DNA of 64,000 nt from Lepidodermella squamata (Eukaryota; Animalia; Gastrotricha). Position numbers and translations under genes: made by a program. The stretch is taken from contig JBLDXI010000019.1 in NCBI GenBank assembly GCA_047495785.1, positions 1,922,001 to 1,986,000 of the forward strand. The letters are read 5' to 3'. Shown here one piece after another: positions 20,593 through 63,860 of this stretch (positions within the stretch are counted from its first letter, which is position 1; every line of letters starts with the position of its first letter). Below the pieces are notes generated by a model. The model was not told the DNA's origin and did no database searches. It saw nothing but the letters and a program-made list of their open reading frames with translations.

Positions 20593-23500
20593 TTAGTTTT
20601 TGATGGGCACAACGAAGTCGTCGAAAATGCACGTCGATTTAGCCGCCGAGCGGTCATGAGCTAACAAGCGAGTGGGAACGGCGCGAAAAAGGCTGGCAGA
20701 TCTCAAAAACCCGCTCTTACTGCCTATTATCATATCCATCTGCGTTAACGTGTACCAGTCCAACATCGTACGAAGCATAGCCTCATCGCCATTCGCATTT
20801 CCATCCAACCGATCTATGTGATACGTTGGCCCGTCAATCACGATCGAACGTAAGCCGCAAGTTTGCAGGAAAGTAGCGACTGCCTGTGATACTTTCCCAT
20901 CGCTGCTTGTTACATAGACCAGGAGTTTACTTGTATCGTTGTAGCCTTGCTCTTTGATTGTACGGAACAGCTCGTTGACGAAGCAGAGAATTTGCGATGG
21001 CAAAAGGCGGCCATCATTTTCAGACCATTTAGGCAGATCAAAGCGAAGTTGTAGGCCGATTTTCGTTGATCGACGCCATTCGTCCGCTTGGATATTCCAT
21101 TTCAGCAAAACTTTCTGGAATTCTGACTTCAACTGAGCAGTTGGTTCGGAGAGAAGCAGGCCAATAGCTGCTGCTTGTAGCGTGACCTGGTTGAGCTGCG
21201 AAAACCGTGGGAATTCGCGGAAATAGTGATCCATTTTCGGAGCGAAGTCCGCGTTGTCGAACAGGGAATTGACAGCGAATAGCGGGCGCGGTTCCAGGTT
21301 GGTTGCCAGTGTCAAGAAGCGTTCATTCGCGTGGGCTGCAGTAAAATCTCGCTTGGCGAAAAACCCGGCTGTATTATCGTCGATCAGCCAATGTCGTGAG
21401 GCTTTAGCCGCCATGTCGCCAATGATAGCCTACAACGGCAAATACAAACACGGACGATACATGCAATACGGTTAAACTGATTTTTTCATATACAGTCGCT
21501 TTGCTATTGTTCAAGTTAAGGTTCGAGATGTATCAAGCTTTCGAACCAAATAACTCGATGACACCGTAAAATTGACTGTAGCATTGAGTCGGAAAAAACG
21601 TGTTTTTCTGGCAAGGTGAATAAATTTTGAAAGGGTCCAAATATTTGCACCACTAAAAATAAAGGTTCCAGCTCTAAATTTAAGCGTCCTGGTACTAAAT
21701 TTTTCAGATTCTTTGCGATTTTGGCGTTTTCGTTTTTTGATCGACACTGATGCCTTCCCTGCACCTAGGATTGTTTTAGCTACCTGGCCCCCTAAGCTAC
21801 GTAGAAAAATGAAAAAGGATCAATGTTGGGTTCCCTGACGGCTGATATCGGAAAAATCGCTGATTTGTGAAATCGATACTTGGAATCGATATCGTCTCCA
21901 AAGGATGAAGTATTTACGCAAACTGAACTCTTCTAGCGAAAAATACGTCAATCGAAGACTAGAGACTCCAAAAACCATATTTAGGGGGAATTTAGTGCTG
22001 GAACCCTAAATTTAGGGTGCCCACTTGGCACAGCCATAATTAAGGTCAGGCCTCAAATAAAGGACGGTCTCATACAATCAGTCCTCCGATTTTTTTCGGG
22101 ACTCGACAGTGTCTGCCACTGGAAAAAAATTGCGAAAAAGTGTACGCCGATTTGGAATTTATTCATATTATGTTTTTCGTTTTTTTCGCTGAGCTGATGT
22201 ACATTGGTTCGAAGTTCGCCAAAATTCGCGAAACTAGTTAATAAGCCATTGAAAAATCACAGATTCTATTTCCTAAATCTTAAAGCCTGAATCTTAATCT
22301 AGGGGAATAAGGTCTTTTATATTGCCTTTTATAAAATCAAGAAAACAAAGAAATAGAAATATAATGCAAGCGAAGCGAGCCAATTTTTCGGCGATTCGCC
22401 TCTGAAAATGCGAAAAATGAGCATCTCGAAGCTGGTTTTTTCTCTAAAAAGGAAGAAATTTTAGGTCTCTCTCTAACTTCCTTCCGGACAGATTCCAGAT
22501 TCCAGATCATTGAAAATTGGGTCTGATGAGAATGGGAACTGTTGGCTTAAGAGAATGGAAAATAAAAGGAAAATGGATATCAGCGAGCGAAGCGAGCAAA
22601 ATTTGCGATATATAATCACGAAAATTGCGAATTTTAACTCGAGAAATCCCTAAACTTGGCTGGCTTCATAGGGTCTCAAAAGTGTACGTCGATTCACTAT
22701 ACCCCTACCCCTTTTCTCAACGGTTTTAATAAGGAATATTTTTTCGTGTCTGCCACTGAGCGTGGTCCAGTGGGCAAAAATCGGAACACTGCATACAATA
22801 TAAGACAGGGTTTCAACAAAAATAATGGACAGGCCCTAGATTGGGAATTTTTATAGTGGAACCAAATTTCGAAAGATGGCGCCAAACCGTTGAAGAGCGT
22901 CATTCTGAATAATTTTGGATCACGATCAAGTTCGTGTTATAAAAGTCTGAAAATCAGATTTTATGCTAACAATCGCGGATAATTTTCTTTTAATTTATTT
23001 TGATTTTTCTGAAAGAATTTCAGTAAATTCGGAAATTTTAAAATTAGTTTCTACCAACAAAAGTAAGACCTTAATTCATTTTAATATAGTATAATATTAA
23101 GAATTGTTTTCCTAAATCTTGGGGAAACCTTTTTTACCCGAACAACGTCTAATTTCATCCGACAATCAAAAGTGTGACTAAAACCTGCCGGCTTGCTTTT
23201 TCATACAAAAAATTACAGGAAAAAAGTGACTACTCGGATCGCCATAAATCTTTCACTAAAATTACGCCATAATTTCACCATAATTATGCCGGTTCAGGGG
23301 CCAAAACAGGGTGCATAAAAGGGGTATGCCCCTACGGAAAAATCGAACACAGGAAAATAGATATTTTCACGTCGGATGATTTTAGTCACATTTTTTGTGG
23401 TCGCATGAAAAAAGTCCCATCCCAATTCTTACGTTTTGAGTTTACCGAGTACAATATTACTATTTTCTTCTTATTTCTATGATATCCCTACCCCCTACCT

Positions 23501-24054
23501 CAAAAGTGGCGCTGAAAACCTGTGAAAAAGCAAACCTGAGGCATGACCGAATAATACGGCATGAAGTATCGCTCAATCGGGCTCGGCCTGGTATGCCGCA
23601 TCCAAAAAACACGATCGGTTAAAACCGCAAGGTAGAAAACGGCAACCATACCGCGAACCCTGTCGCCCCAGCCGCCGCACAAGCTTCCATCGCACACGTA
23701 AATTGCAAAGTTGGGTTGGCTGGCAGTCAGCTGCTTGCTCACAGACCCATTGATGTAGCGATCACGTAGCCACTGCTTGAACATCTCTAGTGTTTGCAGG
23801 TCAACATGTGGGTCTTCCGGGAACACGCTCTTCCGCAAAGGCTTTCCGGTTGTTACATTCACCATGTCATCGGCGATAACTGATGGCTGAGCTCGACCTA
23901 TCCGTTGGGCGGCGAGAGGTTGATAGGAGGGTTCAACACGGGATGATACGATGAAAATCAAGATGGCACCGCAGAATGCAAGAGCAAATAAAGCCAATGA
24001 GCTGCGAATTTCGATCAAACGAAATTTTGAAGCCACCTTAAAGGAATCTGTCAT
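20593..24054 (-). CDS. Type II fucosyltransferase-clan (alpha2/alpha6/O-FUT GT-B superfamily) protein, copy 1, ~451 aa; exons 24054-23536, 21429-20593
   Basis: N-terminal TM anchor; CGGWGDRVRG, KIGLQLR, YVTSSD, LDWYTLTQMDMIIGSKSGF correspond to the GDP-sugar binding motifs of this clan; 2.1 kb repeat-filled phase-0 intron. Confidence 0.8.
21690..21900. repeat. Dispersed repeat family; other copies near 29560-29740, 56110-56300 (inverted) and 61460-61670 (inverted)
   Basis: Shared core ATCGAxACTGATGCCxTCCxTGxACCT...TTTAGCTACxTGGxxCCxTAAGCTA seen by eye; boundaries approximate. Confidence 0.55.
23150..23412. mobile_element. Degenerate small inverted-repeat element in an intron
   Basis: TTTCATCCGACAATCAAAAGTGTGACTAAAA versus TTTTAGTCACATTTTTTGTGGTCGCATGAAA. 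Confidence 0.45.
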
Positions 24055-26988: not shown

Positions 26989-29332
26989 TCACCGCGGCAA
27001 ACAAGAACCAATTTTCTGCCGAACATCGCCGATAGTTGATTCAAAAGGAGGCGTTCCAGTTCTATTGGACCCCGAGTCTGATTCCCACAGTTTTCCGCAC
27101 AGAAGCCGCCAACCTGCGCGTTTCGTGTAGTACATGGCGTAACGATCAGGCGCAAATTTGCTGGCCCGTTCTGCCGCGGATGTGAACGGACTGGCGTAGC
27201 GCTGCCATCGCGAATAAAACGCAACCTGATCAGCCACATCGGCCGTAGTGACAGATTTTAGTCTCGAAAGTTCGATGAAAGCTGAGAAGAACTCGGGTTC
27301 GATTTCATAGCCGTGCTCGTAAGCTGGGTTGATTTCCTTCTGCCAATTGTAATAACTCAACAGCTCAGTAGAAGTTTCGTCCATTGTTGATAGGCGTTTC
27401 AATAACGCAGCTAGCTGTTCCATTTGCGTATCGAACTGCTTCATGTTGATGTAGCTTCCATCGGGGAAGAAATCGCTGTAGTTACCACCCCCGTAAACAA
27501 CAGGGATCGACCCAGCAATGAAGTTGGCGTAGAATGCACGGAAAGCTTTTTCCGATATGTAACCTTCGCATAGCGTGTTTTCGAGGCCGAAAGCGAACCG
27601 ATACTGTGAGAAGAAATCAGTTTGGCCTTTGGCTTCCCAAATTTTGTCAACGTCTCCAGAACCACCGCATTTGCCGAAAATGTCGACCGAGATACCGAGC
27701 CGGTTCAAGGTTTTCACGAGTTCCATTCGCTGAGATCTTGCCCTAAATAAAGTAAAAGGAAAGCCATCATTTGAATTGAGGGATTCAAATGAACCGCTCA
27801 CTTCCAGCTAAATGGGTTAACTTTTGGACCAAACCATGTTCTTTCGCTAAGGGTCGGATGAGCTACCGGAAGGTAAAAGTGAACTTGGTGCAAAACGCCG
27901 GCAAAACTGGGCAGGTCGAAAATCGTCAGAGGACTAGTTTTGAATATTTGGGCGGATTTTATACCAAAAATTAATTTAGACCATTCTCCATCGAATATAT
28001 ATTTATAATTTATAGTAGGGTTCTCGCGTGAAAAAATTAACTGGAGAAATGCTTTACGCGCATCTTACCTTCCGAGATACGAGTGCGCGCACTCTCAACT
28101 GGCGCGCAAAATTGAAAATGCGCGTAAAACGGTTTAATTTTAATTTTTTTTTCACCCCATATCAATTTGATAGAGAATTTTCTGAATTATTCTTTGGTAT
28201 AAAAACCGCCGCGATAATCGAAAGTAACCCTTTGACATCTTGGCGCGCGGCCTGAATTTTGTTAACATTTTCGACGTGGCGTCGACGACGTCACTATAGC
28301 GGTTCACTTTTACCCTTCAATTGCGTAATCGCTTGCGAACCTGAGGGAACTACGATGGACCCAGAATTGAGCTTTTTCTAATATTGAAAATCCATTGCTA
28401 ATTCAGAAATTTCCATTTTCGGAATCAAGATGGGAAATAGGTAAAACACCTATTGGAATCGATCGATTTCTATACCCTAACTCCAACATGGCTTGGAACG
28501 GAAAGTGTAAGGACTATCGGAAATCACTAATGGACTGTGAAATCTGGCACGCTTACGCTCAATTTCTCTATCAATTCAAGGCCAGAAACATATCCATTTT
28601 AACGTGCTGAAATATTTCTTACCCGCAATTGCTGACTATCCAGACAGCGTCCTTCGGTCGAGATTTGAAATTTCTCGCCCAATTCCTGATTTTCGCATTC
28701 CATTCATTCAGATCTAGAGGAGTTGTCGACCGCCGCAGATGGCCGTAGGGGTAGTAAATGTCATTGGTTTTCGCGAACGACATGGTCCAGTTGAACAGCG
28801 CCACGAATCGCGAATCAGGCGAAAAGTTCATCGGCGATTCGTGCGTGAAGTAAACCCATCGTTGAAAGCGATGCCTCACCTTCGGCAAATCTCCGTCAAT
28901 ATTAGGCCCATGAAAAATCAAAGCGCTAGCGTTGTCGACGTATTGCCGGTTTCGCGTGAATAAACACCGGCGCGCGTTGTTGTAAGCCTCCAGCTCGACG
29001 TATGGCCCTTGGTTAAAGGCGAAGTGATCGGCCCATCCCAAGTCGAAAAAGTCTGTCCATAATAGGACGGTTTTCGTCGGAATGTCAGCTTCATTATTGT
29101 CGTGGTACCGCGGCGTTGGTTCGTACTGCCAGTTGGGAAGAAAGACTGGCACTATCGCGGCATCATCGTCGTAGTAAGCACCCGCCAGCGATTTGATACG
29201 ATCGAATTTGTTAACTGAACTCGTAACAAAAAGCCATCCCAGGACGACAACCGAGGCGAATAGAGGTAAAATATAGCGAAGTTTTGGAAATGGGTATCTA
29301 TGATACCCGACTTTAATAGTTAGCAGCGTCAT
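26989..29332 (-). CDS. GT10 alpha-1,3/4-fucosyltransferase, ~487 aa; exons 29332-28623, 27742-26989
   Basis: TM anchor; WVYFTHESP, FNWTMSF, AVWIVSNC, VDIFGKCG, YRFAFGLENTLCEGYISEK, IPVVYG. Confidence 0.92.
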
Positions 29333-30588: not shown

Positions 30589-33500
30589 TTAATCTTTCAC
30601 TTTCGGTACAACCTTGCTGAGAAAATATCTGTCAATTTCAAGGCGGTTAACGCGTTGCAGCCACTGATCCATAGCCCTGGGTATGACGGATGTAGTTGGT
30701 ATCTTTCCACCGCACGTCTCGTCAGATTGGATAGCCTGACCTGCAATCAAAATTGAAGTTTCATGAACTGAGGGAATTAAGAATTAGGAATTACGCAGCA
30801 ATCCCACGAAACCGGCCAGTCTTATAACCAGACAATGATTGTCGTTGAGCCCAGCAGTGAAAATCAAGCTGTCGACAGATTCCATGAACAAACCTGTGCT
30901 GAACAGAAGCGGCTTATTCGTTCGCCACTCGGCACTTGGCACGTTGATCATGGTATCTGGGTCGATGAATATCGGCGATGTCACTAGGGCAACTCGGTTG
31001 TACCTTGCATTAATCAATGTCAGCTGGGCTGCGTATTCTGCAATAGAAATTGCAACATGCAGTGTTTCAAATTGCGCCGCGAAAGCTGCGAAATCGAGAG
31101 TTCCCATATTCTTTCACCTGGTTGGATCACATTTCTTTGGATTTTTTTTAATCCCATTCACAAGAGACATACAGTGTGCCCCATAAGTAACGCAAGCAAA
31201 GAAAATACACGGAAAATATTTCCCACACAAAATAGCCATATTAATAAATAGTTGCGCGACTTCTGGGACACGCTGTACTTGATTACTACTATCACGGCAT
31301 TTTCGATTTTTTTTTCTAAGATTTTTCTCGCTATGGGTGTATTTTTTTATTCCCCGCCTCGCCCTGGGCAGCCCGCCGGATTTCCCGGGAAAACAATAAA
31401 AAAATCCGGGCTGGGCGGGCAATGAGCACATTTTTTTATTCGCCCGTGTTTTGGTGCGGATGAGCTAGGATTTTCTGGGATTCGCGGGAAAAAAGCAATA
31501 AAAAAATCCGGGAAACGCGGGCGCCCGAATGCATTCAGCAATACAGCCCAACTTTCCCGCGGGAAAGCGGGGAGACGCGGAATAATTATTGAATGTTAAC
31601 GGACATCGCCTGAGCGCGTTTTTAACAATGCGCGTGATTCATGCTAATCAGAAACTCTATATAGTAAATTCAAAAATAGGATGTTGTGATGCACATCGCT
31701 TCATTCTATCGACTTCTCCGAATTTTTCAAGTTTACACTAATTAGCTCTGTCAAATACGAATTCCGTTATTTGAAATCGCTTGTTTACGGCATCGATGAG
31801 GTTGTCATGGACTGGTTAATCTCCTTCGCGCTCTTCCAGGTCGTTCACCGCGTTATTGGCCCTTTTTCTTAACCCCAGGGAAATTCGAAAATCGCTTCCG
31901 TAATATGGCAATCGGTATAAAGCGATCACAGATAGGTTAGGCTGAGATGATTAAACGCGTATTCAAGTTATTCAAGTTAAATTAAGTAATTCTTATGATT
32001 TTTGTCAATTTTTTGCAGTGAAATCGCGTGCCTGAGCAATTTTTTGCTTCAACGCCCGGCTTCGCCCGGTCTCAAAAGGCCGGGCGTTACGGGCTGGGCG
32101 GGAAGTGCGGGAAACCAGAGAAAATTGCTGAATGCTCTGCGGACGACACGGGCGAGTCGGGCTGTGCGGGCAGAATAAAAAAATGTTCATGGGCAGTGCC
32201 CGGCTTTTTTGCGTTCGGGCAGGCCGGGCTGAATATAAAAATACACCCTATGAAAAGTTACTTCTCGTCTCATTTTAGTCTTTCTGATGCCATTTCCGTG
32301 CATTTCCTCTGTTTGCGTTACTTATGGGACACGCTGTATGAGTTATTCTTGAATTAATTAATGGATACTTACCAACTGAACCAATCAGGCGAGTGCTCGT
32401 ATGCGTTACAGCGAGATAGTAATCACCCTCGTAATGCACGAATGAAGAGCCACCGCGAAGAAACAAATGATCGGTGCCACCGTTTTCACTGCCTATAACA
32501 AAGCGGCAATGGACAATCCTTGCATCGTCGTCGCGGTAAGGCTTAAATTCGCATTCCATAACGCGGAATTTGGGAATGATTTCGTAGATTATCCGCAGCT
32601 TGCCGTTGTAGATCCAAGGTGCCCAATTTTTAGCCGCGCTGGGGAGTTTGAGCGTATCGCTTGCTTTGATAGAATACAGCACGTTGTCGTCCATTGACCA
32701 TAGGAAGACACGCCTTGGAAAATTATTCAAATGAATGTTCAGCATTAACAAAATACAGCATGCCCCATACTTAAGTAACGCAAGCAAAGAAAATACACGA
32801 AAAAGGGTTCAGAAGCTCTAAAATTAGAGACGAAGTCACATGTCATGGTCAGAATATTTTTAGAAAAAAATAAAAAGAATAACAGTCAACTGTGCGACGG
32901 GTTCACGAGATTTAAAAATTCCGGAGAAATTTGGTCCAACCGGGAAAAATACCGAAAATTACCGAGCAAGTTACCATCGGAATTTTCCAGATTGTCCCCG
33001 TAAATTGGCGATTACTTCGCTTAAATCGCGGATAAAAGATGAAATAATCTAGCGGTAGGGTTAATTCATATAAAATCAGTGGAATTTTCTTCAAAAATTT
33101 GCCAAACTAAATAATCGTAGCGCAGCTTCTGGGACACGCTAGAATTAGTAAAGCAAACCCATGTAACCCACTTCTCAAGAAAAATCTTGCCAAAATATAA
33201 AGTGTCACATGAGAACAGAATAGAAGTACGTTACTTGACGATGGAATTATAAAAATCTGGAGAAATTTGGCACAACGGGATAAAATACCGAAAATTACCG
33301 AACCAGTTACCATCGGGGTTTTCCGGGTTTTCTTATTTAATTTTTCATTTCCACATAAAACCGTGGATGGAAGATTTTCCCGTCTCATTTTAGTTTAATT
33401 TCTAACTAAAATTCTAAGGATGTGCCATGTAGACACCTTAAATTTGCTCCAGAATTAGATTTACCCAAATAATGATTTGTCGGGTTTACTATCTTTCCTA

Positions 33501-34258
33501 CAATATCAATAATATTATTTGTATAATATCAATTCATTTTTATTACGACGCTATTGATTTGATACCCGAATTTACCTCAAAAACTTGGTGCCGTAATAAT
33601 GAGCATTTGTGAACGCGATGAAAGCCGTGCCGTTGAGCTCGAACATCCGCGCATCTTCCGGCCCGGTATACACCGGCTGTTGAATGACACTCGGAATGCC
33701 AAGCAGATCACCTGAGCGCGGTACAACCTGCATATCACGATCTAGTTTCACGGTGTACATGAAGCTGTCCTGGTAACGATTGAATTTGATGTCTTTGCTT
33801 AGCCGGTTCCAGACTCGAATAGCACACAAAATTTCGCCGTTATGCGGCATGCATGGGCCTTGCATCGGATACGGCCCGTTGCCGTTGATTAGCCACTTTT
33901 CCGAAGCTCTCACGTGATCGGCGAACATGTTTCGCACGTGGTTGTTGACCGTAGGCGTAAAGTCGAACAGAATTGAGGTAGTGACGAATGATGGCGGAGA
34001 TTCCTTGATCTTGTTGCAAGTTTCTGGGTTGACATGCACGCCGCTGAGATTGAATTTGAAATGCCGATTGCCGACTGCCGCTACTAAGAAGTTGCCAGCT
34101 CCAGCTTCCCTCGGTGACCTGGAAAATGTGCTGTTTTGAGGAGATAATAGCACACTTAAGGAATCGCAACCCTTTCGCCATAGACAGAGCGACATCATAG
34201 CAGTTGAGACGATCATGAGCAAAGTTAGAGACAGTCTGGGGCATTTTGAAAATGCCAT
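30589..34258 (-). CDS. Type II five-bladed beta-propeller glycoenzyme, GT91/BMT beta-1,2-mannosyltransferase-like (GH130/GT108-related), ~472 aa; exons 34258-33576, 32713-32373, 31037-30795, 30740-30589
   Basis: N-terminal TM; GPEDARMF, KNWAPW and LRGGS in the order seen in fungal Bmt proteins (GPEDPR, KNWxPF, RGGT); 1419 nt in frame with GT-AG introns. Confidence 0.72.
31172..32336. mobile_element. Tc1/mariner-like MITE (TA duplication) in the intron of the BMT-like gene; related ends near 29782-30165, 32757-33140 and 43480
   Basis: TA|CAGTGTGCCCCATAAGTAACGCAA ... TTGCGTTACTTATGGGACACGCTG|TA. Confidence 0.75.
31335..32248. mobile_element. 914 bp non-autonomous element nested in the previous MITE; 3 bp TAT duplication (PIF/Harbinger-like)
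   Basis: TAT|GGGTGTATTTTT...AAAAATACACCC|TAT, with GC-rich CCCG/CGGG subterminal repeats. Confidence 0.7.
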
Positions 34259-34941: not shown

Positions 34942-36322
34942 TCAAATTTCAGCCAACTCTGTTAATATTTTACAGTAAGCGCAAATCTCGGGATGATTTT
35001 TCCTTGTCGATTCCGAATTTTTCTCAGGATATTGAGTCCGCAAAATTCTTGACAGCTTAAAAGGATGCAGTGATATCACCCGATCCAAGTCCACATTTTC
35101 AGCCGGCCGCGTCCCAACAGGCACGCCCTGGACGAAATTTCGAGAATTATCAATAATGCCGACTTCTGCCGTTGCGTTGAGGCACGCGAATGCTGTTGGA
35201 ATTGCAAGTTCTTGAAACAGGCGATTTTCAGCCATTATTTTGAAAATTGGCAGAATGAAGGGGAAATGGCGGCGTGAAATGTAGAAAAAATCAGCCATAC
35301 CAGACACAACTCTTCGCTGGCCGCCCGTAAATCGCGCAAGATTTTTCACACAATTATTTCCGATTTCATCACTCTGAAGTTTCTAAAGAAAAAGTGAATT
35401 AAAATTTCAAAATTTCGATTTCTAAAAATTAAAAATTCAATTTGTTAATTCAATTTTAAAATTTCAAAAAATTCCATTTCTAATATTGTAATTTGTAAAT
35501 TCAAAAATTTCAATTTCAATTAAATTTAAATCTAGCAAAAATTACTTTGAAAATCGATCTTGCTCGGCTATGGTAAGGATAAGCCCACCACCAATCAAGC
35601 GGAACGGTGCATTCGCCTGGAACATTACACGCTTTCATCCTATCAACATCATAAACACGGCTATGCGGCATTGCGTAGCTTTTTTCGAAGTCAAATGTCG
35701 AATTATTGGCCAGAAGATTCCAGAAACCAAATAAAACATCGTCATGGACTACGAATACTCCACTTATGGAATCCTTGGCAAGTTTTGACGTCTCCACAGC
35801 TTGATTAACGCATTCGTAAATTGTCTCGCCGATTCCTGGGTAGAGCGATCGTTTTGTATCGTAATTTAAATATCGATTTTCGTAATAATCGATAAAATCT
35901 TTCGATGCATTTTTGAAGTTCCGTTTCAAAGCTGAGCTGTATCTGGAGAAGTCAACCGATGGCCCGCAATAACGAATTTCGGCGAAAAATTTCGAGTATA
36001 AAGCATCGATTAGGACTGCTGATTCATAATGCTGATCCCAATTGAAGGCAACGACGAGAATTGTTGAATTTTTTAAACGGTTCAATCTGATTTTATCGAA
36101 GTTCAACGAGGAAATGTTTTGCCGTGAAAATGTGTACGTAATGTTATTGCCCCATTTTTCTGTAGCATTGCAGAATTCGATCGCAATATTATCAGCAGAT
36201 TTTGATATCGGCGATGCAATTATAGACGATTTAAACAAATTTTTCGGTCCTGTGATCGCAGTTAAGATAATAATGATCGGAGATGAGAAAATGAAAGCAA
36301 TCAACGAATAATTTGGTAGCAT
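34942..36322 (-). CDS. STELLO/DUF288-family-like putative glycosyltransferase (C-terminal domain only), type II, ~405 aa; exons 36322-35546, 35382-34942
   Basis: TM anchor; ILVVAFN...LYSKFFAEIRYCGP, YEC, GVFVVHDDVLFGFWN, DFFYI, FQELAIPT, HPFK resemble the second half of STELLO-type proteins. Confidence 0.72.
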
Positions 36323-44918: not shown

Positions 44919-45231
44919 TAAGAAATTCTACATGTCCGACAATCATTTCACCCGGTTTTTTCCTATTACGAGTCCATTTACGCTTTGCGTGATTATTTTT
45001 GAGGCGGCTTAGAAGCGCCGCCCGCCCAGCGAAGAGATAGGCGCGCGTGATCACCGTCGCCATCACGCTACAACAAGGTGCACAGGTGCGCCGGCACCGC
45101 TTTGATCACAGCGCTGCCGCTTCAACAATCAGCAAGCTCTGGAGCTGTATGGATCTTGATTTCTATCATTTTCAAGTTGATTATCATCTGCCACTGCCAT
45201 AATATCATGAAAAAAAAAATTCGAAAATTCC

Positions 45232-45535
45232 TTTTTTATTATTGAGACGTCCCATTCGTTGAATGGATGGGCCGAAGCCATGGGTCCCGAATGAGCGCTC
45301 TTAGGGTCGCTTGTTGGGGTCTCTTGAGGACAGCTCGGTAGCGATTAGTGCAGTCTCGCTGACACTCCTAATCTACCACTTTTCACTTTTGTAACACGAT
45401 GGAGTGGTCGGCCACCGTCGGGGTAGAGCGTCATTGATAAACCACGGTCGACCCGGGTGGGGATCGAACTCGTGCCCATCGATCTTGACGCTCAATACAC
45501 AGCAGACAGCTATCCACTGAACTACTGTGTGCCCC
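45232..45535 (-). mobile_element. tRNA-derived SINE
   Basis: Pol III A box TAGTTCAGTGG, B box GAGTTCGATCC, ~200 bp body and AATAATAAAAAA tail; no proper cloverleaf. Confidence 0.7.
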
Positions 45536-49900: not shown

Positions 49901-52900
49901 TATCTCTGTGAACAACGCCATTGTCGTGAAGACACTTCAAAGCAGAAGCTAGTTGTCTGGCCCAGGATTGCAGTTGGACCTCGCTGATTAATTCCAGATC
50001 TTTTCCGATTCGACTGTCCAAATCACCTCCCTCGCAGTGTTCCATTACCAGGTAGTACATCTGACAGCCCTGTTTGAAGCTATCCTCTCTACGGTATGGC
50101 TCTAAATTACAGCCTAATAATCATGTCTGGATAGCAACGAAAATCAGCCATACCCCGAAAGGCTCCAAATATCAATACTATGTTCGGGTGGCGCAGCTTT
50201 TCCAGCTTCGAGTGCTGGATTACGTTATGATCGAATTGGATTGCATTCCCCTTATTATTAGTAATTATTATCCTTATTATAAATACCTTACCTCGTCACA
50301 GGTCATTTTGACTAGCTTCTTAGCTTGGCTCTCATCCTTGCAACTTCGTTCCATGCCCGTAATGTTAACTTCTTTAACAACATAGTTCTCATAAGATGTC
50401 CCTTTTCGACACAAGTAGACCGAAGTGCCGAAGCCACCGTGCCCTAAGACTTTCCATGTATTGAACTCGATTGCAGATTTTATAGCAACTAGCGGCTCGG
50501 TCTGTTTCGGTCTATCGTCAGCCATTTCGCGGCGTAAAAACGTATGAGTCAGAGCTTGATCAATGGTCGGTCGGCTGCTACTCTTCTTCTCCAAAAGAGA
50601 CAAAATGAAGTCGCGGCATTCGGCGGAATAACCACGAGAATCGTCAAATGGCCAGGGTGCTTCGCTGGAAATGCCGTCAAAAAAGAATTTCAGAATTAAG
50701 ATTAAGGAAAATTGAGGATATTCAGCCGATTGCAAATTGATCTAGAAGCTTTTAAATACTTGCTTAAAAATGTTGTTCAAAATTGCACCCTTTGACTGAC
50801 CATTGAACTGAAATGAATACAGCAGGTAAGTTGGTTGAAAGGTGACGCTTTTGAAAGGCGCTTACAGGTTTCACAAAATTTGCCGTTTCATAGAGGGTGA
50901 CGCCAAACGACCACATGTCACAGGGTGGCTGATAATTATTGGTTTCAAAGTAGTCCGGGGCAGTGTATGCGACGTCATAGAAATACACTTCAGCTTCAGT
51001 ATGATCAACCCTGAACAGAAGGAAGCAACATTTTGAATATCATTAATATATAAGTACGGTATATACAGTGCAGAATCGTTATAAGAATGGGGTATATAAC
51101 GAACTTTTGTTGTAACCATAGATATAGTTCAGTATAGATCGCCCACTAGCGTGAAAAAGGGTGTACGCCATGGGCGCCAGATGGTCAGATGATTCATCAG
51201 AGGCTTGGAGGCCAAGTAAACAAAATATTCGATTCTTTTTTCTTGGATCCGATCAAAGTTTGAAAATTTCTTAAACATGATTCCAGATAGGTGACATCAC
51301 AACGAACACGCTTATTTTTTCATGATTTTCAACTCAATATGGACCACAAAAATCAAAGAGAAATGATTTTGCGATTGGAAATAAAATGAATTAACACCAC
51401 TTGCGGAATCGAAATTGAAGCAGTTTTTTAGTGGTCCGTGTAGCCCAGATCGAGCTCTACAATTCGATTCTTGGAGCGGACTTAGATGAATGTTTATCGA
51501 TTTTCTGCAATTTTTTGAAAATTGAGCATTGATTCATCCATTATGAAAATCTGGACTTGGAGGATTCAATTCAGAACCTTTGTTGACAGCACGTGCGCCG
51601 CATGCACATGTTGTGGTAGGACAGAGTCCAAACCTTAATTACAAAAGGGCAGCAAGTTATGTAAATTATGCTCTCGATTCCTTTAAAAAATTGCAGAAAA
51701 TCGATAAACATTCATCTTTATTGGAGTCCGCTCCAAGTATCGAATTGTAGAGCTCGATCTGGGCATAATTCATGATTCAAATAGCGACTTTTTTGTGCGC
51801 ATCTTGGCGTCGAGCGAAAAAAAGAAGTTGCCACCGAGCACAGAACCCAGGATGTTTGTTTAGCATGTTCTGAGCTAAACCACTATGCCACTAGCGAGCT
51901 TCGGTGGTTACAGGTATTTCTGTCATTATCTTCCAGTTTTGCTGCTGACTTGCGCCTAGCGCCATGAAAGTTCAATTTTCGATTATATTGCCCGCTGTAA
52001 ACATAGTTGAAAACTAGTCATTACATTGAATTTCAGATTCAAAACAATAGCCGATATTATCATAGCCAAAAATAAGCTAAATCGAATAGTTTAAAGCCCA
52101 AGGATTAATATTAATGTAATGAAACACAGGGAATCTCTAGACATCAAATTGCGAAATTGCGACATCAGGCCGTAATTTTGCGTGGCTAGTTACGTTGACC
52201 CCGTTGAATGAGCCTCCTACAGGTGAAACACCCTGTAAGTCTCATGCAAAATTCAATATTTTCAGCCAGGACCTAAATGTTTTATCTGATATAACTTAGG
52301 ATATTATGAAGAACATCGGCTATCGGCGTCGAAGACTATGGATGCAAATCCGTCTGTTTGTTATACCGCTTTACGCAAGGCTTCGGCAACTAGGAAAATT
52401 GTATTGTTTGATTAAACTTGGTACCCTATTCCATCGAAGAGATGAATATCAGTTTCAATTTGCGTTCATTCTTCAGTGGAAGTATATTTCCATAGAATAA
52501 CAGCATTCTGAATGTGGGGATAGTTCTTCCTACGGTAGAATAGTACTCTCCTCACCTTCAGACTGCTGTTATTCTATGGAAATAATATACTCAGCCCAAT
52601 TGAATGCTCATAAAATGTCCCTTCTATCCGTTATTTTCATCCATAACTTACTGATTCACGTGTGTGGCGATGCTAAAATCGCCGAGTTTGACTGTCAGTC
52701 CGTCTCGGCTCAAAAAAATGCGCCTTGGCTTGATATCTCGGTGAACAACGCCATTGTCGTGAAGACACTTCAAAGCAGAAGCTAGTTGTCTGGCCCAGGA
52801 TTGCAGTTGGACCTCGCTGATTTTTTCCAGATGTTTTTCGATTCGTCTGTCCAGACTTCCACCCTCGCAGTGTTCCATTACCAGGTAGTACATCTGACAG

Positions 52901-53279
52901 CCCTGTTTGAAGCTATCCTCTCCACAGTATGGCTCTAAATTACAGCCTAATAAACAGGTGTGAAAACCAACTGAAAGCATTTATACCTTGAAATGCCCCA
53001 AACATCCGGACAATGTTTGGATGGTGCAGTTTTTCCCACCTAGAGTGCTACACGTCGGGATAAGTTTTGAATTGCAATTCCTACAATTAGCAAATACCTT
53101 ACCCCACCGCATATCCATTTTTCAGCTTCAGGTTGATCGCGAAAATTCCGTCCGAATTTCGTAATGTTGACCTCCATGATAGCATAGTTTTCATAACTTG
53201 CCCTTCTTCGACACAAGTAGGTTGTGCCACCGCGTGCTATAGGTTTCCACGTATCGAACTCGCTAGCTGATCTGAACAT
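46946..53279 (-). CDS. Tandem NEK-like pseudokinase + kinase + ankyrin-repeat protein, ~742 aa, 12 exons (53279-53103, 53047-52987, 52934-52652, 51010-50866, 50807-50764, 50664-50292, 50214-50154, 50101-49819, 49569-49425, 49363-49320, 47723-47525, 47359-46946)
   Basis: Exon sizes 61/283/145/44 occur twice; exon 50664-50292 runs from the end of domain 1 into domain 2 with no stop; HRDIKPKNIFL and VKLGDFGIAK are NEK-like; ankyrin repeats GTALHAAA, DTPLMTAA, GQTALDLA; 2229 nt in frame using one GC donor at 50763. Confidence 0.85.
47850..49305. mobile_element. Two adjacent inverted-repeat elements filling a kinase intron (CCGTA/TACGG type ~47850-48592; CGACAA/TTGTCG type ~48610-49305)
   Basis: Short motifs repeated in one orientation at the left end and reversed at the right end of each; boundaries approximate. 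Confidence 0.45.
51443..51764. mobile_element. MITE with ~90 bp inverted arms in a kinase intron
   Basis: GCCCAGATCGAGCTCTACAATTCGA...TCGAATTGTAGAGCTCGATCTGGGC. Confidence 0.75.
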
Positions 53280-53569
53280 TTAATACAACTTTGCGTAATT
53301 GCCTGATAATTTGTATTTGCATAGACTGACAAGGTTGAAATTGGCTTCGTATTATGATAAGCTTCTTTATTGTGGGTATAGTTAACAGCAAATTGCCGAG
53401 AAAGTTGCATTGAGTAAGAGAGATATCACGAAGTGTTAAAGACTGCAGAATGAATGGGTTATTTTTATTTCATCCGACACAACATTGGTGTCCGTATGAT
53501 AACGTCTAGATAGCTGGCGGGGCGAACTAACTATTTACTAAATTTTTCTCAAAAATACAATTTCACGAA

Positions 53570-53885
53570 GGGTCCCCTGTTAGCGGAACCAAATTTAAGG
53601 TGAACGGAACCAAATTTGCTGTATCGGAACCAAATTGTAGACTTTTCTAGTGGCCTGAAATCGCTTTATTGCAGATTGCAGGTCAAGATTGGCCACAAAA
53701 AATTCACCAGAGAGTTCAGACGGAGTGTTCAATTCAGAATTCATGCTTAGCTTAAAATTCGTAGAAATAGTCAAAAAATGACTCTCAGCATATTTCGAAT
53801 TTGGTTTCGCAAAAAGCAAATTTGGTTCCGCTACAGCATATTTGGTTCCGCCACAGCAAATTAGGTTCCGCTAAAAGATATTCCG
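53570..53885. mobile_element. 316 bp Mutator-like MITE
   Basis: Perfect 9 bp duplication TTTCACGAA at 53561-53569 and 53886-53894; GGAACCAAATT repeats at left and inverted copies at right. Confidence 0.82.
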
Positions 53886-54986
53886 TTTCACGAATGAGAT
53901 GAGTGTGTTGACAGCGAGGCCAAAATCCGGAACTGAAAGTTGCGCCTCTCGTAACGTGTCTGGGTCAAGTCAAATTTTTTCCGCGAAGAAATCAGGCGTA
54001 ATATTACATTGAGGTTCCTTCATATAGCAGGCGTTTCCTCTTCGTCCATTACATGTTTGTGGGCGCGTGATAATCCGACAACGCTTCAACCCAGCGCAGA
54101 ATCGCTTCGAGAGCTTTTCTTGGCTTTTTAAGCCAGATAGTTTCAGTCGGTCTCAACTACTTTTTCGCGAAGATTTTATCTAGGGGGAAAGTAAACGGCT
54201 TTAGGCCGCAATAAGGCAATCCTTGCACCCGATTGTCTTGTCAAACATGCCCGTGACAGCGATGGAATTAGAATACCTTACTTATTTTGGGTATCGATGT
54301 TCGATTTCCGCCTATGAACAAATCAATTTTATATTGTTAGAATTCATTTTCAGTGTTTTTAATTGCGGTATTTTGACAAAAACCAAATTCCAAGATCAAA
54401 CTGAGAAGCAATCACCACAGAAAATTTGCGAAATTATAGGCAGATATGTGTCGTAGAAAGAAGAGCAAATTGCGTTTTTGCACAAAACACTGAATTTTAT
54501 AGAGCAATGCCTTAAAACCTATATTTGTATTCCCATATCTGAAAATCGAGCGTAATGCGCAATCACGCTAGATCGATGACAGGAAAATTTATCAGAGCTA
54601 CCTACCAGAGCTATCAGAGCTATATTAGAAGCGAATTCATCTTCGATCGTTCAAATCCCTCAACATTTGCAATCGGAATTTTTGAACATTGAACATTTTT
54701 GAACCGCAAAATATTATTTTTCGAGTTTGGCGTCTTCACTGATTCATAGTAAATTCGTAATCGCAAATTCGCACAGTGGTTGATTCATAACGTGATATTA
54801 TCGTACAGAGTAAGTTCGTATCAATACATTTTCATATTAAAAGTGGTGATCTTTTCGTAACCGGACCTAAATGAAAACACAAAATAGTGATCGTTTCGAA
54901 GCAAACGCGTGATATGATTTAATATTCTCGCCCTTGAAACCGTGGTTTCGCTGATTCGGCACCCATTCATCGTGATTTTGCGTAAG

Positions 54987-56006
54987 ATGCGTTGTACAAT
55001 TTGCAATCAAGTTTTTAAAAATGAGCGTGGCCTTAAGATACATGTTGGGCGTGTACACTCGGATAAGGCTAGGGTAGATGTAGCTGAAAATCATGCTGAT
55101 AACACGGCTTCATCCTCAGCGGCGAGCCTAACTCTTAATAATACAACTATCTCTGGCCTGCTCCCGAGAGAAGCATCAACTCCGAGACTTACCGACTTGG
55201 CTCTTCCTCAGCCGCCGTTGTCGACCAGCGTAGTAGTACCCACGCAGCTCCCTGTTTTACCGACTGCTCCTCCGCTACCGGCCGGGCATGAGGCTCCGTT
55301 TTACTATTGGCAGCAGCAGCAACAGCAACAGTGGCAACAGTTTCAGCAATGGCAACAACAGTTTTACCAAAATATTCAACAGCAACCATTTCCGTTGGCT
55401 CAACCACCTCCGTTTATTGGTCCAATTCCTCAAGTTCAAGTACAGTCCACTCATGTGCCCGGAGCTCAACAACCTGGCTCAGAAGTCTCAACCCAACCTG
55501 CCTTGGTTCAAATTCCAAGACCCAAACAGCCAAATGCCCTGCTGATTCCCGATCGTTTCTACACCACTACCAGGAACAACAAGGCTCTTGGTTGTAAGGG
55601 TAAGATTGCGAATTTCGTTTAAAATTCCGAGATACAGTATTCCACCTTAAAGGTTTTGCCTACTACTGGATTGAATCTCGCGGAAACTTTCGGTGCAAAG
55701 ACTGTTTCATCAGCCCGATTCTGAACGCTAACGGAACTGAGGTAGTTGGGCTGGTTGGTAACCATGACCATGCTCCTGATTTCTTCGAAATCGAGTCCGA
55801 CATCGCTGCTGCTAGGATGAGAGCACGAGTAAGGTCGGAGAATACTGGTTGGGAATTCCCGAAATCTATCGATCCGAGCTGAAAACCGATATTGATTTCG
55901 GCGAAAAAGTCGGCTTAGACCGCGAGGCATTGGCTGCAAAGATCCCCAACTTCGAGGACATGAAACGGTCACTGTATCGGATCCGTGGCAAACAGGAGCC
56001 TCGGTG
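54987..56006 (+). pseudogene. C2H2 zinc finger + Gln/Pro-rich + FLYWCH-type zinc finger, MULE-transposase N-terminus-like, frameshift near 55850; intron 55600-55652
   Basis: CTICNQVFKNERGLKIHVGRVH; after splicing, GFAYYW...FRCKDC...NHDH; a shifted frame gives IPNFEDMKRSLYRIR, typical of the helix after FLYWCH in MULE transposases; no DDE domain seen. Confidence 0.6.
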
Positions 56007-57210
56007 ACCTCGTCCCTACAAGGTTACTATTCACCTCTTCACTATAGCTTCACTCAATTTATTTGTTAATATATTTCCACCCTATAGATCTCTCAATTGC
56101 GCGTATTTTCCGCCATGGGCGATCAGTTTAAGAACTATACTTCAGCCTGCAGAGTCGAGGATCGATTTTACAAATCATTCTTTATTTTTCCGATAATCCC
56201 CGTCTTGAAACCTGACATCGATAATTTGTCCACGTAGCTTAGGACTCATGCGGCTAAATTGAAAAAATGCCAGGTTCAGGGAGGGCATCAGCACCGATAA
56301 ATTAAACAGAATGAATTCCGCCATCTGCTAAAAAAACTGGACCCAAAAATGACCGTTAAAAAGTGAAAAATGGGGTTTGGCGAAATTTCGGACATCGAGA
56401 AATTTTAATGGCATTTTCAAGATCAACTAACGAGGAGTCGAACGATATCAAAAATTGGTCGATAGTCATCGGGGTTGCAGAGGAAATGGGCTTCAGTTTG
56501 CGAGCGAAAAATCCTAATTTAAAACATCAGCCCATGCAATAAATACTGATGTTATTTTCGTATGTACAGTTGACATTTTACGGGAAATCTGGTGAGGAAT
56601 CTCGTTAGATATTCAAAAACTTTGTTGGGGTCAAGCTATAGTGCGTCTCACCTTCAAAACCGCATTGTGACGCCGAAATTGCGTCTCAAGAAAAATCTGA
56701 ATATCAGAGCTTGTCGTTCCTGCAGCAAAACCGGCTCATTTTTCTCCCACTGTCCTCATTTACCAAACGATCCTCGAATACGAAAATTCAGCCTGTAAGA
56801 CCTATTCCTTCAGGCTGCTCTATTGTTAGATTTTATCTGGCGACACAATTTCGGCGTCACTATGCGCCACAGCATGGCCGCCACAGCAACCCCGATGACT
56901 ATCAAAAATGAGAACCTGAATCAATAACACTTTAAGGGCAACTCTGGGGTTTTCTGTGTTTCAAGGAGGATGAGAGCATCCTAGAGTTCTGAAATTCGAA
57001 ATTTCCTCAAGAAAAACTGAGTAAGAACATCTTGGAATCTAAAAGTCGTCCGTCTTCAAATATAAAGTTTCTTGTTACTTTTCACTTGCTGTTAGCGGTC
57101 AATTTAATTTCACCGAGACCGTCGAACAAAAATTCCTCAGTCCATCTTAAATTTATTCATATTTCACATCGTCAGCATGCATCAAATTATTACAAATACA
57201 AAGTGTTCAT

Positions 57211-60199
57211 TCATCTTCGGAGCAAGTCATAAATAGGTCCAGACGATGTTTCAGGCAACGGCCTGCCGCTGTAGTCATCAAACGTGCATAGCTCCTTCGC
57301 CCCTGGCACCATCCTTCTAGTCGGCGCCAGCGAAAAGTGGGAGGCTGATTCGCCGTAGCCGCTGCGGCTTATCACCAATCGGTCCATAGCTGTCAATAAA
57401 TGCCAGTCGAGGTAGGTCTTCGCCTCGTCGAACCACGCTGCCTCGTCGAAAACAGCCTTCGAAGCCATTTTATCAAGGTGTCTAATCGTCAAGTTGTGCC
57501 TGCTGTCCGTGGTGAAGATTTTTATCGTGGCCGCCGTAAAATTGCTCATAATTTTGTTAAAATCGGCGAAAGCTGCGCCCCAGTCTGTTGTCATAAAGAT
57601 AGTGGCATCGCGGCCAGCAATTTCCGGCGAATTTAGGAACTTTTTGACCTCGTCCGCAAAGCAATGCATAATGTCGATCTTGTAGTTATTCGCGTTATCC
57701 AAATCTGAAATTATAGATAGTATTAGGAAATTCGCTCTGTAGAAGGAAAAACGCAACGGGGGGATCGGGTTTTTTTTCTTGTGAAATGTCCTCAATTAGG
57801 GCCCTAATTCACAAATTTTCAAAATTCACCTAAATACTAGCTAAAAAAACCGAAAAAATAGAATGCCCTAATTAATCTACCGAATGCATGAAATCAAATG
57901 AAGTTGACCTTTTTGTATGAATCATAGCTGGCAAAGAATAATTAGGTCATGGCTAATGAGGAGCAATTTGAAACTGGCGCCTGTGGTTTCGCAACATGAA
58001 CTTCGCTTTTTCCAATAGGTTTGACCTTTTAGCAAAGTTCAGACAAAAAACTAGAGCAATTTTGGGACTACTACACAATGCAAGGGATTAAAAATGTGCG
58101 CACGCAAAAAAACGTCAAAACATTTGTCAACAAGGAAAGGGCTCACAATGCATAAAAAAACAACGCGCGCACTAATTAATTTGTGTCATGTTGCTGCTCA
58201 TGCAACAAATAGAGCACGCCACGCCGTGTGCACTATTTATCGAAATGAGTGCACGCAAAAAACTCAATCATAGTTTTTGAGTTTTGGACATTTTTATGTA
58301 TCATGTTTGAAAATCATGGCTGGTACTCGCCCCGCGAATTTTGCCGCTGCCACTACGGAGGCTGTCGATGCTGAAACGCCCGGAATCAGCGCCGCCGCGA
58401 GGTCACACGAGAACGGCGTCTGCCAGAGGCGACTCCCCATCGCCGCTAATCGGGGTCGCGCCGGCATCGCCCCGCCAATTTACCTGCGCCAGCGCCGCCA
58501 GATCAAGACGCGATAACGGAACTGCAAATCGAAGATGAGCGCCACGCAATTTCGGCAAGTTCTCCCTGTTCAACTGTTCAAGCCTGAGCAGTCGGTTGCG
58601 TCACTCGGTTCATCAACACCTGTTTTCGAGCCTGTTTCTCAACTCCTTGCCCTGGACGAAGTTGAAGCCAAAATCACCGGCTTTCGCGCAGGGCAAAAAG
58701 TCGAAGAAACCTTGATGCAGAAGTGCGCGGTCATCAAGGCCGAGCTGGCCGATTTCGTCGCAAATTTTGCCAGCTTTAACATCTCATTTACTACTTGCAC
58801 AATAACTCATTTTTAGCCATTATTTTCAGCGCTGATAATATTGAATAAAATAATTTTCAATAAAATACCAAGGAGATGGCTCTACAGAGGAACGCAGTTC
58901 AGAATAAAAAAATTCAGTTCTTGAAAATAAATTTCCATGCGTGCGCGAAATTAAATTGCAATTTTGATACGTTTCGAGGCCTTTCCAGAAAAAATTATTT
59001 TAAACGTTTTAAGGCTTTGTTTTCAAGGCCTTGCGTTTCGATTGTTGCATTGTGTAGTAGTCCCGCAATTTTAATTCTTCGTCGGCTTTATAGGCGTGAC
59101 AAATAAGTAAACGAATTTCCTTAAATTGGCATGCGAGATAAGCTAAATTTGAGCTTCGAAAACTCAAATTTGGAAAATTTGGAAAAGCAGCAAGCTTACC
59201 AAAGCTTCGATACTGAACGCCGATTTTCACCGACCGGCGCCAAAATTCCAGGCCGACAGAGTCTGAAATGACTCGATCCCGCAACTTGCTCAATTTATCG
59301 CCCGGCTTGTCCAAAATAACGCGTAGAGCCACCGAAATTGCGATGTTAAGGTCGTCGCTATTCTCCGTCAATCCCGGCGCAAATTTGTCGAAATTGCCTC
59401 GAAATTCCTGTTTCCGCAATAAAGCATCCAAGCCGTTGTGCCTGTTGGACATCATCTTGAAATATCGGTACTGCTCATACTTCCCAGTAAAATTTTCTTT
59501 CGTCATAAATTCGTAGTAAGGCCCAAACGGGCCATCATTGTTCATGCCGCTGCTGAACGAAAACCATTTCGTATTCCCGTGGTCGTAATGCTGGCCAAAG
59601 GAGTCGCGAAACACCTCACTTCCGACGTTGTAGTACTTTTCGTTGACATCAAAATAATCGGCAACATCGCCCGGTCGGTGCCATTCGAAGGTGAAAGCGC
59701 GATCGGTGGCTAATGCCAGGTAAAACGCGATGACAGTTCCGCGCAATCTATCGCCGAATCCGGCACAGCTATAAGGCACCGAAAAACGGCAACCATAGGT
59801 CGAGCTGGTGAACGGTGGGTACATGAAGTCGAAGCATGTTATATTGCTTGGAATAACGGATCGCTTGCAGAATGATGATGAAAATTGTATTTCTTTCCGG
59901 GTTTCGGGCGACTGAAATTTGTCAGAGAACCGTTTGATATAGTTTCGTCTTATCGACTCAGCGATAGCGATGGCCTTGGCTTGTTTCGGTGAAACAGCGA
60001 CGGCATTTGGAGATGATCCATCGTCGAAATCAGAAGTTGTCGTATCGTCGATCGATGAGCTGTTGCCCAGAATGCTAAACCGATATCGAAATCGCTGCAA
60101 ATCAGGGGGATATAGCACTAGAACCGGCAGGATTACTAAAGACACTAGCCCTATCGTTATGTTCACGAAGTACTTCCTTTGCAGAGTTGTATTTAACAT
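57211..60199 (-). CDS. Fucosyltransferase-clan protein, copy 3, ~497 aa; exons 60199-59200, 57704-57211
   Basis: TM anchor; CAGFGDRLRG, KIGVQYR, FMTTD, DWHLLTAMDRLVISRSGYGESA; same intron site as copy 2. Confidence 0.85.
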
Positions 60200-61820: not shown

Positions 61821-63860
61821 TCATCTTCGAAGCAAGTCATAAATAGGTCCAGACGATGTTTCAGGCAACGGCCTGCCGCTGTAGTCATCAAACGTGCAAA
61901 GCTCCTTCGCGCCTGGCACCATCCTTCTAGTCGGCGCCAGCGAAAAGTGGGAGGCAGATTCTCCGTAGCCACTGCGGCTTATCACCAGTCGGTCCATTGC
62001 TGTCAATAAATGCCAATCAAGGTAGGTCTTCGCCTCGTCGAACCAGGTTGCCTCGTCGAAAACAGCCTTCGAAGCCATTTTATCAAGGTGTCTAATGGTC
62101 AAGTTGTGCCGGCTGTCTGTTGTGAAGATTTTTATCGTGGCCAATGTAAAATTGCTCATAATTTTGGTAAAATCGGTGAAAGCTCCGGCCCAGTCTGTTG
62201 TCATGAAGATGGTGGCATCGCGGCCGGCGATTTCCGGCGAATTCAAGAACTTTATGACCTCATCCGCAAAGCAATGCATGATGTCGATCTTGTAGTTATT
62301 CGCGCTATCCAAATCTGAAATGATTATAATGATTAAGAAATTCGCTCTGTAGAAGGGAAGACGTAACTCTGCACCAGAAAAACCGGGGAAAACTTTTTTC
62401 ATTCCATCAATGTCTTTTTTTTAATAATTTGTGGGTGTGCCAAGTGCGCATCCTCAACATAACATAATGATCTGTTATCTTTATAAGTGCCCTCTCTTTC
62501 CACCAATACTTGGGGTTCTAGCACTAAATGTGAGACTCTAGCACTAGATTCCCCTAAATATGGTTTTTCGAGTTTCCACTCTTCGCTAGAATCTCACATT
62601 TTTTGTTATTGCCTAACCCCTAACCGCTTGACCTTCATATTACGCGCATTTCCCGCTATGAGCGATAACTTTACGAATTATACTGGTATGCTATAACATG
62701 AGTTAAGAATACATCTCTGAACGGAGCCGGCCGAGATTTACGAATCGAAACGAGTCGGAGACGAGTTGAAATGAGTAAATCGAGTACGGCGAGTTCAGAT
62801 ATAAACGATTTACGAAAATTGAAAATTTCGGGAAATTCGAAGAAGTAGCAAGCTTACCAAAGCTTCGATACTGAACGCCGATTTTAATCGACCGCCGCCA
62901 AAATTCTAGGCCGACAGAGTCTGAAATGACTCGATCCCGCAACTTGCTCAATTTATCGCCTGGCCTGTCCAAAATAACGCGTAGAGCCACCGAAATGGCG
63001 ATGTTAAGGTCGTCGACGTTTTCCATCAATCCCGGCGCAAATTTGTCGAAATTGCCTCGAAATTCCTGCTTCCGTAATAAAGCATCCAAGCCATTATGCC
63101 TATTGGACATCATCTTGAAATATCGGAACTTTTCATACTTGCCAGTAAAATTTTCTTTTAACATAAAATCGTGATAAGGCCCAAATGGCTTGTCCATGTT
63201 TAGCATGCTGTTGAAAGAAAACCATTTCGTACTCTCGTGGTTATATTGCTCGCCGAAAGTGCCGCGAAACGCCTCACTTCCGACGTTGTAGTACTTTTCG
63301 TTGACATCAAAATAATCGGCAACATCGCCCGGTCGGTGCCATTCGAAGGTGAAAGCGCGATCGGTGGCTAGTGCCAAGTAAAATGCGATAACAGTTCCGC
63401 GCAATCTATCGCCGAATCCGGCGCAACTAAAAACCGAGGAATACCGACAACTACCGCCGCCCGAGCTGGTGAACGGTGGATACATGAAGTCGAAACAGGT
63501 GATACTGCTAGGAATAACAGATCGCTTGCAGAATGACGACGAAAATTTAACATCTTTTCGGGTTTTGGGTGATTGAAATTTTTCAGTGATCCGTTTCATA
63601 TAGTTTCGTCTTATCGATCCAGCGATTGCGATGGCTTTAGCTTGTCTGGGTGAAATAGCGATGCCATTCGGCGGTAAGCCATCGTCGAAGTCAGAAGTTG
63701 TCGTATCGTCGATCGATGAGCTGTTGCCCAGAATGCTAAACCGATATCGAAATCGCTGCAAATCAGGAGGATATAGCACTAGAACCGGCAGAATAACTAA
63801 AGACACTAGCCCTATCGTTACTTTAACGAAGAAGGTGCGTGGTAGAGCAGTGTGTAACAT
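61821..63860 (-). CDS. Fucosyltransferase-clan protein, copy 4 (recent duplicate of copy 3), ~498 aa; exons 63860-62858, 62314-61821
   Basis: Exon 2 is 494 nt and nearly identical to copy 3; same motifs and intron phase; shared upstream sequence CAGCACGCGATCGGTCGAGAAAAGTA. Confidence 0.85.

Follow-up and report, generated by a model that had tools for sequence, protein, structure and literature searches.

A neighbourhood of seven same-strand genes for predicted Golgi-type sugar-transferases from four unrelated families in the gastrotrich Lepidodermella squamata

We analyzed a 64,000-nucleotide stretch of the genome of the gastrotrich Lepidodermella squamata (GenBank assembly GCA_047495785.1, contig JBLDXI010000019.1, positions 1,922,001 to 1,986,000; hereafter, the window), in which the segment from 20,593 to 63,860 carries seven intact, spliced genes on the minus strand. 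These genes, which we refer to as A to G, possess confirmed open reading frames (ORFs) and encode predicted Golgi-type sugar-transferases of four unrelated families: a fucosyltransferase-fold family resembling glycosyltransferase family 37 (GT37; genes A, E, F, and G), GT10 (gene B), a family related to the fungal beta-mannosyltransferases (BMT) of GT91 (gene C), and STELLO-like proteins (gene D). Five of the genes, in the order E-D-C-B-A, are consecutive. The locus is a real cluster that is not unique in kind, as a precedent from Daphnia shows, while its mix of families is new. We favor the interpretation, to which we assign a probability of about 0.5, that A to G form a lineage-specific neighbourhood of working genes for glycan-decorating enzymes, which most likely rests on shared regulation or on selection that acts on the terminal decoration of glycans.

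Gene models were derived by looking for GT..AG introns that connect adjacent ORFs in frame, and a single clear solution was obtained for each gene, with donors of the GTAAG-type consensus and pyrimidine-rich AG acceptors. Four genes are predicted to encode proteins with a GT37-like fucosyltransferase fold: gene A (20593..24054; exons 24054..23536, or 23548, and 21429..20593; a type II membrane protein of about 447-451 residues), gene E (37799..40462; exons 40462..39415 and 38313..37799; 520 residues), gene F (57211..60199; exons 60199..59200 and 57704..57211; about 497 residues), and gene G (61821..63860; exons 63860..62858 and 62314..61821; about 498 residues). The GT10 gene B (26989..29332) has two exons (29332..28623 and 27742..26989) and codes for about 487 residues. 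Gene C (30784..34258), whose product is a BMT/GT91-like type II membrane protein of about 425 residues, has three (34258..33576, 32713..32373, and 31037..30784), and gene D (34942..36322; exons 36322..35546 and 35382..34942) specifies a STELLO-like glycosyltransferase-like protein of 405 residues. In each of the seven deduced proteins, a short N-terminal tail is followed by a hydrophobic stretch of 19 residues within about the first 35 residues (Kyte-Doolittle mean 1.9-2.6).

The five consecutive genes are spaced by gaps of 0.7-2.9 kb, and an AATAAA signal lies 29-230 nucleotides past the stop codon of every gene from A to G. These gaps and the separate AATAAA signals indicate individual transcription units and rule out an operon; each gene would hence be transcribed on its own. 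The arrangement E-D-C-B-A brings together adjacent genes from at least three enzyme families of one chemistry, which is one criterion for a functional biosynthetic cluster. The initial annotation of this DNA had described seven co-oriented Golgi-type enzyme genes from four families, and we found all of them in place on the minus strand, with open frames and N-terminal anchors. Its description of the layout, five consecutive genes with two further fucosyltransferase-like copies following, holds for the five; genes F and G do not follow directly, since 16.7 kb of unrelated genes (40463..57210) intervenes.

The four genes A, E, F, and G are paralogous, with identities of 82% between F and G over exon 1, of 46% between E and G, and of 31-46% in local alignments of A with E. 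The position and phase of the intron are identical in E, F, and G, and DNA repeats common to F and G are 88-95% identical. A comparison of F with G yielded a synonymous divergence (dS) of 0.32 and a non-synonymous divergence (dN) of 0.066; the resulting dN/dS ratio of 0.20 demonstrates that both copies have been retained under purifying selection. All four genes contain the motifs C-x-G-x-G-D-R-x-R-G, (H/Q)-x-R, H-(I/L)-D, and S-x-S-G-(F/Y), which gene A keeps in the form of CGGWGDRVRG, QLR, HID, and SKSGF. MAFFT misaligned the arginine column of the (H/Q)-x-R motif for E, F, and G, in whose sequences QLR/QYR is visible.

The family of these four genes was traced largely through their relatives; here, as in all searches and structure predictions of this study, the exons of A to G were used singly. 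With the Pfam profile XG_FTase (PF03254; GT37), A, E, F, and G scored 11.8-16.6 bits in the N-terminal motif only, below the gathering score of 23.4. A word-based protein search with exon 1 of gene E returned no relatives, and sequence and profile searches of the PDB with the C-terminal fucosyltransferase-like exon found nothing meaningful. When a four-sequence profile of A, E, F, and G was compared with the PDB, the only top matches were the Arabidopsis enzyme AtFUT1 and a 'probable fucosyltransferase 4', at non-significant E-values of 0.16-0.26. A profile search recovered 71 relatives, and those that bear an organism name are nearly all from bdelloid rotifers (Rotaria, Adineta, Didymodactylos); a metagenome scan yielded seven loci with uninterrupted ORFs of 380-450 residues for full-length relatives. 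A hidden Markov model (HMM) built solely from such rotifer and metagenome proteins, and hence from sequences outside the window, was run against the 463 ORFs of the window; it retrieved all eight exons of these four genes and no other ORF (E-values of 2e-14 to 6e-4; 2e-14 and 4e-12 for exons 1 and 2 of gene A, 1e-12 and 6e-4 for those of gene E, 4e-9 and 3e-6 for gene G), with collinear profile coordinates.

The predicted structure of one bdelloid rotifer homologue, P0019, computed from a 47-row alignment that included the window exons, reached a predicted local distance difference test (pLDDT) score of 89.8. In a Foldseek search with this model, the top 16 chains were all AtFUT1 (E-values down to 3e-13, template modelling score about 0.53), followed by FUT8, NodZ, and POFUT1. 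Similarly, the Atlas look-alikes of the family are XG_FTase, O-FucT, and FUT8 clusters, and the best Atlas match of gene E is an XG_FTase cluster (0.92). A direct model of exon 1 of gene E from the four-sequence alignment was unusable (pLDDT 33). Taken via the rotifer model and the homology of the window exons to the P0019 family, A, E, F, and G are predicted members of the fucosyltransferase superfamily with a GT-B fold (GT37/GT23/GT65-like). The initial annotation had placed them in a FUT clan, and this label proved apt: the fold is GT37-like, even though the Pfam threshold for GT37 is missed.

The best structural match of the family, Arabidopsis FUT1, is a xyloglucan alpha-1,2-fucosyltransferase of GT37 (PDB 5KOE, 5KWK, 5KOP, 5KOR, 5KX6), and it shares with the four gastrotrich proteins an N-terminal G-x-G-(D/N)-R motif. 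The two differ in that identity amounts to only 15-17% and that all genes of the window fall short of the XG_FTase threshold. To the best of our knowledge, xyloglucan is absent from animals; the acceptor of A, E, F, and G must therefore differ from that of AtFUT1. Among the relatives of the rotifer family is a protein (P0058) that is filed under an Ignavibacteria metagenome bin; because it is 54% identical to rotifer proteins, it probably stems from mis-binned rotifer DNA.

Judged from its sequence, gene B clearly encodes an ordinary GT10 enzyme, a predicted alpha-1,3/4-fucosyltransferase. It matches the Pfam profiles Glyco_tran_10_N (PF17039; E-value 2e-21, 76.7 bits against a cut-off of 28.7) and Glyco_transf_10 (PF00852; 1e-25, 90.8 bits against 23.9), and its PDB matches are FUT9 (1e-10) and FucTA (4e-10). 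The motifs VSNC...R, which here crosses the splice junction, and E-N-...-E-K are common to gene B and to GT10 enzymes such as human FUT9 and FucTA. Gene B departs from these enzymes by the length of its product (about 487 residues) and by a C-terminal motif in which the usual D-Y reads G-Y.

Gene C was assigned through its homologues. Its exons gave no Pfam match, that of BMT (PF12141) included, and nothing meaningful in the PDB. A HMMER search with exon 1 against 1.84 billion representative sequences found 18 relatives, the best of which is 46% identical. Ten C homologues were tested against Pfam; PF12141 was the sole match in eight of them, two of which lie above the gathering score of 28.3 bits (P0001 with 30.0 bits, P0015 with 29.3 bits) and six below it, and a ninth (P0004) matched GH130 weakly. 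In the Atlas comparison, the best matches of gene C itself are BMT clusters, and a GH130-like hint appears at rank 13. This hint and the weak GH130 match of P0004 are all that points to a GH130-like beta-propeller, the fold that the initial annotation had named for gene C. All three exons of gene C are collinear over their full length with intron-free homologues in loci L001-L006, and the gene keeps the conserved elements GPED-R, LRGG, and YY-A-TH. By homology, gene C is a member of an animal family, some proteins of which reach the BMT/GT91 threshold, while gene C itself does not. Of two chromosome-scale animal assemblies with this BMT-like family, one has it in tandem copies and the other as a single copy, which indicates an old animal family rather than a private import.

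With the fungal beta-1,2-mannosyltransferases (Pfam BMT PF12141, CAZy GT91), gene C shares the profile match of its homologues, the BMT look-alikes in the Atlas, and a type II topology; it differs from them in lacking a Pfam match of its own and in an alanine before the KNW motif. Our search of the literature found no paper that links GT91 to animals. Both introns of gene C carry interspersed repeats of very high copy number (31000-31600, 31980-32370, and 32768-33360), over which the summed contig depth in the source DNA sequencing run rises to about 46,700, compared to about 57 for unique sequence. As to the relatives of gene C, assembly GCA_910592395.2 contains three tandem copies of a 567-residue BMT-like gene (L017, 10001-21704); in the called protein (P0007), many short repeats follow one another in the N-terminal part. 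The BMT-like gene adjoins a DUF229/sulfatase-like gene in two loci that are unrelated to each other, one on a metagenome contig (L006, 2030-3820) and one in assembly GCA_903813345.2 (L018, 13102-15090), which may represent a conserved pairing; none with DUF229 was seen among the scanned ORFs of the window.

The product of gene D matches the Pfam STELLO profile (PF03385, formerly DUF288) with 28.6 bits (cut-off 27.8; E-value 8e-7) over profile positions 168-318 of 387. This score above the gathering threshold and the type II topology are what the protein shares with STELLO proteins; the partial coverage of the profile sets it apart from them, as does the outcome of a word search with exon 1, which found no relatives. 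A search of the PDB likewise returned none. We know of no defined enzyme activity for STELLO proteins in any organism. Over the exons of gene D (34935-35990), the source DNA run shows about double depth, and extra short contigs that are 4-10% divergent are present at about single-copy depth. These data suggest a close paralogue elsewhere in the genome, which fits better than a second allele. Taken together, the family assignments of the initial annotation, the unusual BMT/GT91-like call among them, were borne out by Pfam for GT10 and STELLO, by the P0019 model and the HMM for the fucosyltransferase-like genes, and by the PF12141 matches of the C homologues.

How might such a neighbourhood have arisen and persisted? 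From what is known of these families, A, E, F, and G would be inverting GT-B enzymes of a superfamily that uses GDP-fucose, with a fold closest to plant GT37; gene B would be an alpha-1,3/4-fucosyltransferase, gene C a relative of fungal GDP-mannose-dependent beta-mannosyltransferases, and gene D a STELLO-like protein. Local duplication may have generated F and G recently and E and A much earlier, with the unrelated families placed alongside. The genes would then most probably have persisted as terminal, fast-evolving decorating enzymes, presumed to be active in the Golgi, under common regulation or under common selection on the glycans of the surface, the mucus, or the egg coat. We envision an arrangement that would resemble the 'FuT islands' of Daphnia rather than a strict step-by-step pathway.

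Several findings weigh against this interpretation. Genes F and G stand apart from the other five. The acidic residue that precedes KNW is E or D in all ten homologues of gene C and alanine in gene C itself, which may thus be non-catalytic, and the family assignment of gene D depends on one match barely over the threshold. A single, doubtful RNA run had matches to little apart from the repeats in introns. Short sequences (k-mers of 7-10 nucleotides) shared among the 600 nucleotides upstream of genes A to F were not above the level in random-segment controls; 33-94 of 300 control trials gave values at least as high. Conserved linkage, whose absence, together with uncorrelated expression, the initial annotation had named as counting against a cluster, did not emerge either: each of 18 loci (208 kb) around fucosyltransferase-like or BMT-like homologues contains one of the four families and no second. 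These loci derive from bdelloids, two other animal assemblies, and metagenomes, and their homologues are 24-46% identical and not orthologues; given this distance, they provide only weak evidence against conserved linkage.

The negative results on upstream sequences and on linkage are in line with an alternative in which the adjacency is meaningless and duplication and rearrangement in a compact genome with greatly expanded families have brought the genes together with no coupling between them. The probable close paralogue of gene D elsewhere in the genome also fits this explanation, which we nevertheless regard as unlikely, although it ranks next after the favored reading. As the initial annotation correctly held, tandem duplication cannot set four unrelated families side by side. 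By our own rough estimate, which uses assumed gene numbers, for five glycosyltransferase genes in a row to arise by chance at the 5% level in a set of about 25,000 genes, more than about 7% of all genes would have to encode glycosyltransferases; random placement is consequently a very unlikely source of the five-gene, four-family run at any plausible glycosyltransferase density. The location of all five genes on one strand also argues against neutral adjacency.

GT10 enzymes, the FUT clan, and GT91 enzymes all use GDP-sugars. This common donor type of three of the four families, the occurrence of four unrelated families within five consecutive genes of the same strand, the intactness of all genes, and the purifying selection on F and G are in keeping with a dedicated biosynthetic cluster, in which the enzymes would act successively on one acceptor to yield a single fucosylated, beta-mannosylated glycan and in which linkage would be kept for co-inheritance or co-regulation. 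Adjacency itself is what speaks for such a pathway; a joint function is a plausible hypothesis. We nonetheless consider a strict pathway rather improbable, and slightly less likely than neutral adjacency, since A, E, F, and G, as paralogues, probably represent alternative rather than successive steps, gene C lacks the acidic residue conserved in its family, and neither a shared upstream motif nor linkage of the four families in the 18 loci was found. A broader principle is likewise rather improbable, namely that this animal routinely groups Golgi glycan-decorating enzymes of unrelated families in co-regulated clusters, here for a multiply fucosylated and possibly beta-mannosylated surface glycan; if true, animals would possess an equivalent of the polysaccharide loci of bacteria and the metabolic clusters of plants.

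Bdelloid rotifers carry many foreign genes, and an island of horizontally acquired genes, in which GT37 and STELLO genes of plant type and GT91 genes of fungal type would have been acquired jointly, in the manner of bdelloid subtelomeres, would accord with Pfam names that associate three of the four families with plants or fungi and with the finding that the closest relatives of A, E, F, and G to bear an organism name are from bdelloids; it is highly improbable in view of the spliceosomal introns in every gene, a G+C content like that of the flanks, neighbours that are ordinary animal genes, the presence of the BMT-like family, with tandem copies, in two chromosome-scale animal assemblies, and fucosyltransferase-like sequences that match rotifer or metagenome proteins and not those of plants.

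The favored reading of A to G as a neighbourhood of glycan-decorating genes gains context from other animals. To our knowledge, animals rarely have glycosyltransferase clusters of mixed families, and few such clusters have been studied, the Daphnia complex being the main published case; we are also aware of no animal protein of the GT37-like, BMT/GT91-like, or STELLO-like type that has been characterized. In the Pasteuria Resistance Complex of Daphnia, 'FuT islands' combine alpha-1,3-fucosyltransferases with galactosyl- and GlcNAc-transferases and are tied to parasite resistance (PMC11500718). The initial annotation had assumed that glycosyltransferases of different families are normally scattered in animal genomes, a premise that these multi-family islands weaken (PMC11500718). 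Like A to G, the islands are an invertebrate locus with duplicated fucosyltransferases beside other glycosyltransferase families, and the Daphnia set is thought to shape surface glycans. The partners differ, being galactosyl- and GlcNAc-transferases in Daphnia and GT37-like, BMT/GT91-like, and STELLO-like proteins in the gastrotrich. Moreover, the Daphnia complex has a documented resistance phenotype and haplotypes that are hyper-divergent; as for haplotype divergence or copy-number variation of the Daphnia type in the gastrotrich, the extra contigs over gene D are better explained by a paralogue than by an allele.

The A to G locus offers a compact candidate set for expression studies and glycomics that joins three orphan families to GT10. 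Should the genes prove to be co-expressed, this would open a route to assigning functions to the orphan families and would allow a test of whether the diversity of surface glycans in micro-invertebrates is organized in clusters.

The window has a G+C content of about 42% and the appearance of a compact animal genome. In the interval between E and F, a minus-strand OTU-like ORF (42281-42877) shows a weak otubain (Peptidase_C65) match around a GDGNC motif and comes after a long stretch of low complexity. Minus-strand ankyrin and protein-kinase exons span 46946-53279 between the two parts of the cluster, among them an ankyrin exon (46946-47353) and kinase exons (49290-50735). An ORF on the plus strand (54942-55622) encodes a single C2H2 zinc finger and, after it, a tail rich in glutamine and proline; no other plus-strand ORF of considerable size occurs between 6 and 64 kb. 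The left flank of the cluster comprises two NRF-6-like acyltransferase genes, exons of a Cys-loop channel, and a bicarbonate transporter gene. We considered a leftward extension of the cluster and rejected it: the ORFs at 15.9-18.5 kb are of low complexity and have no Pfam match, and they probably encode the N-terminal part of the bicarbonate transporter. The two NRF-6-like acyltransferase genes (Acyl_transf_3) are arranged in tandem on the plus strand (980-5069), with an ORF for an NRF domain between them.

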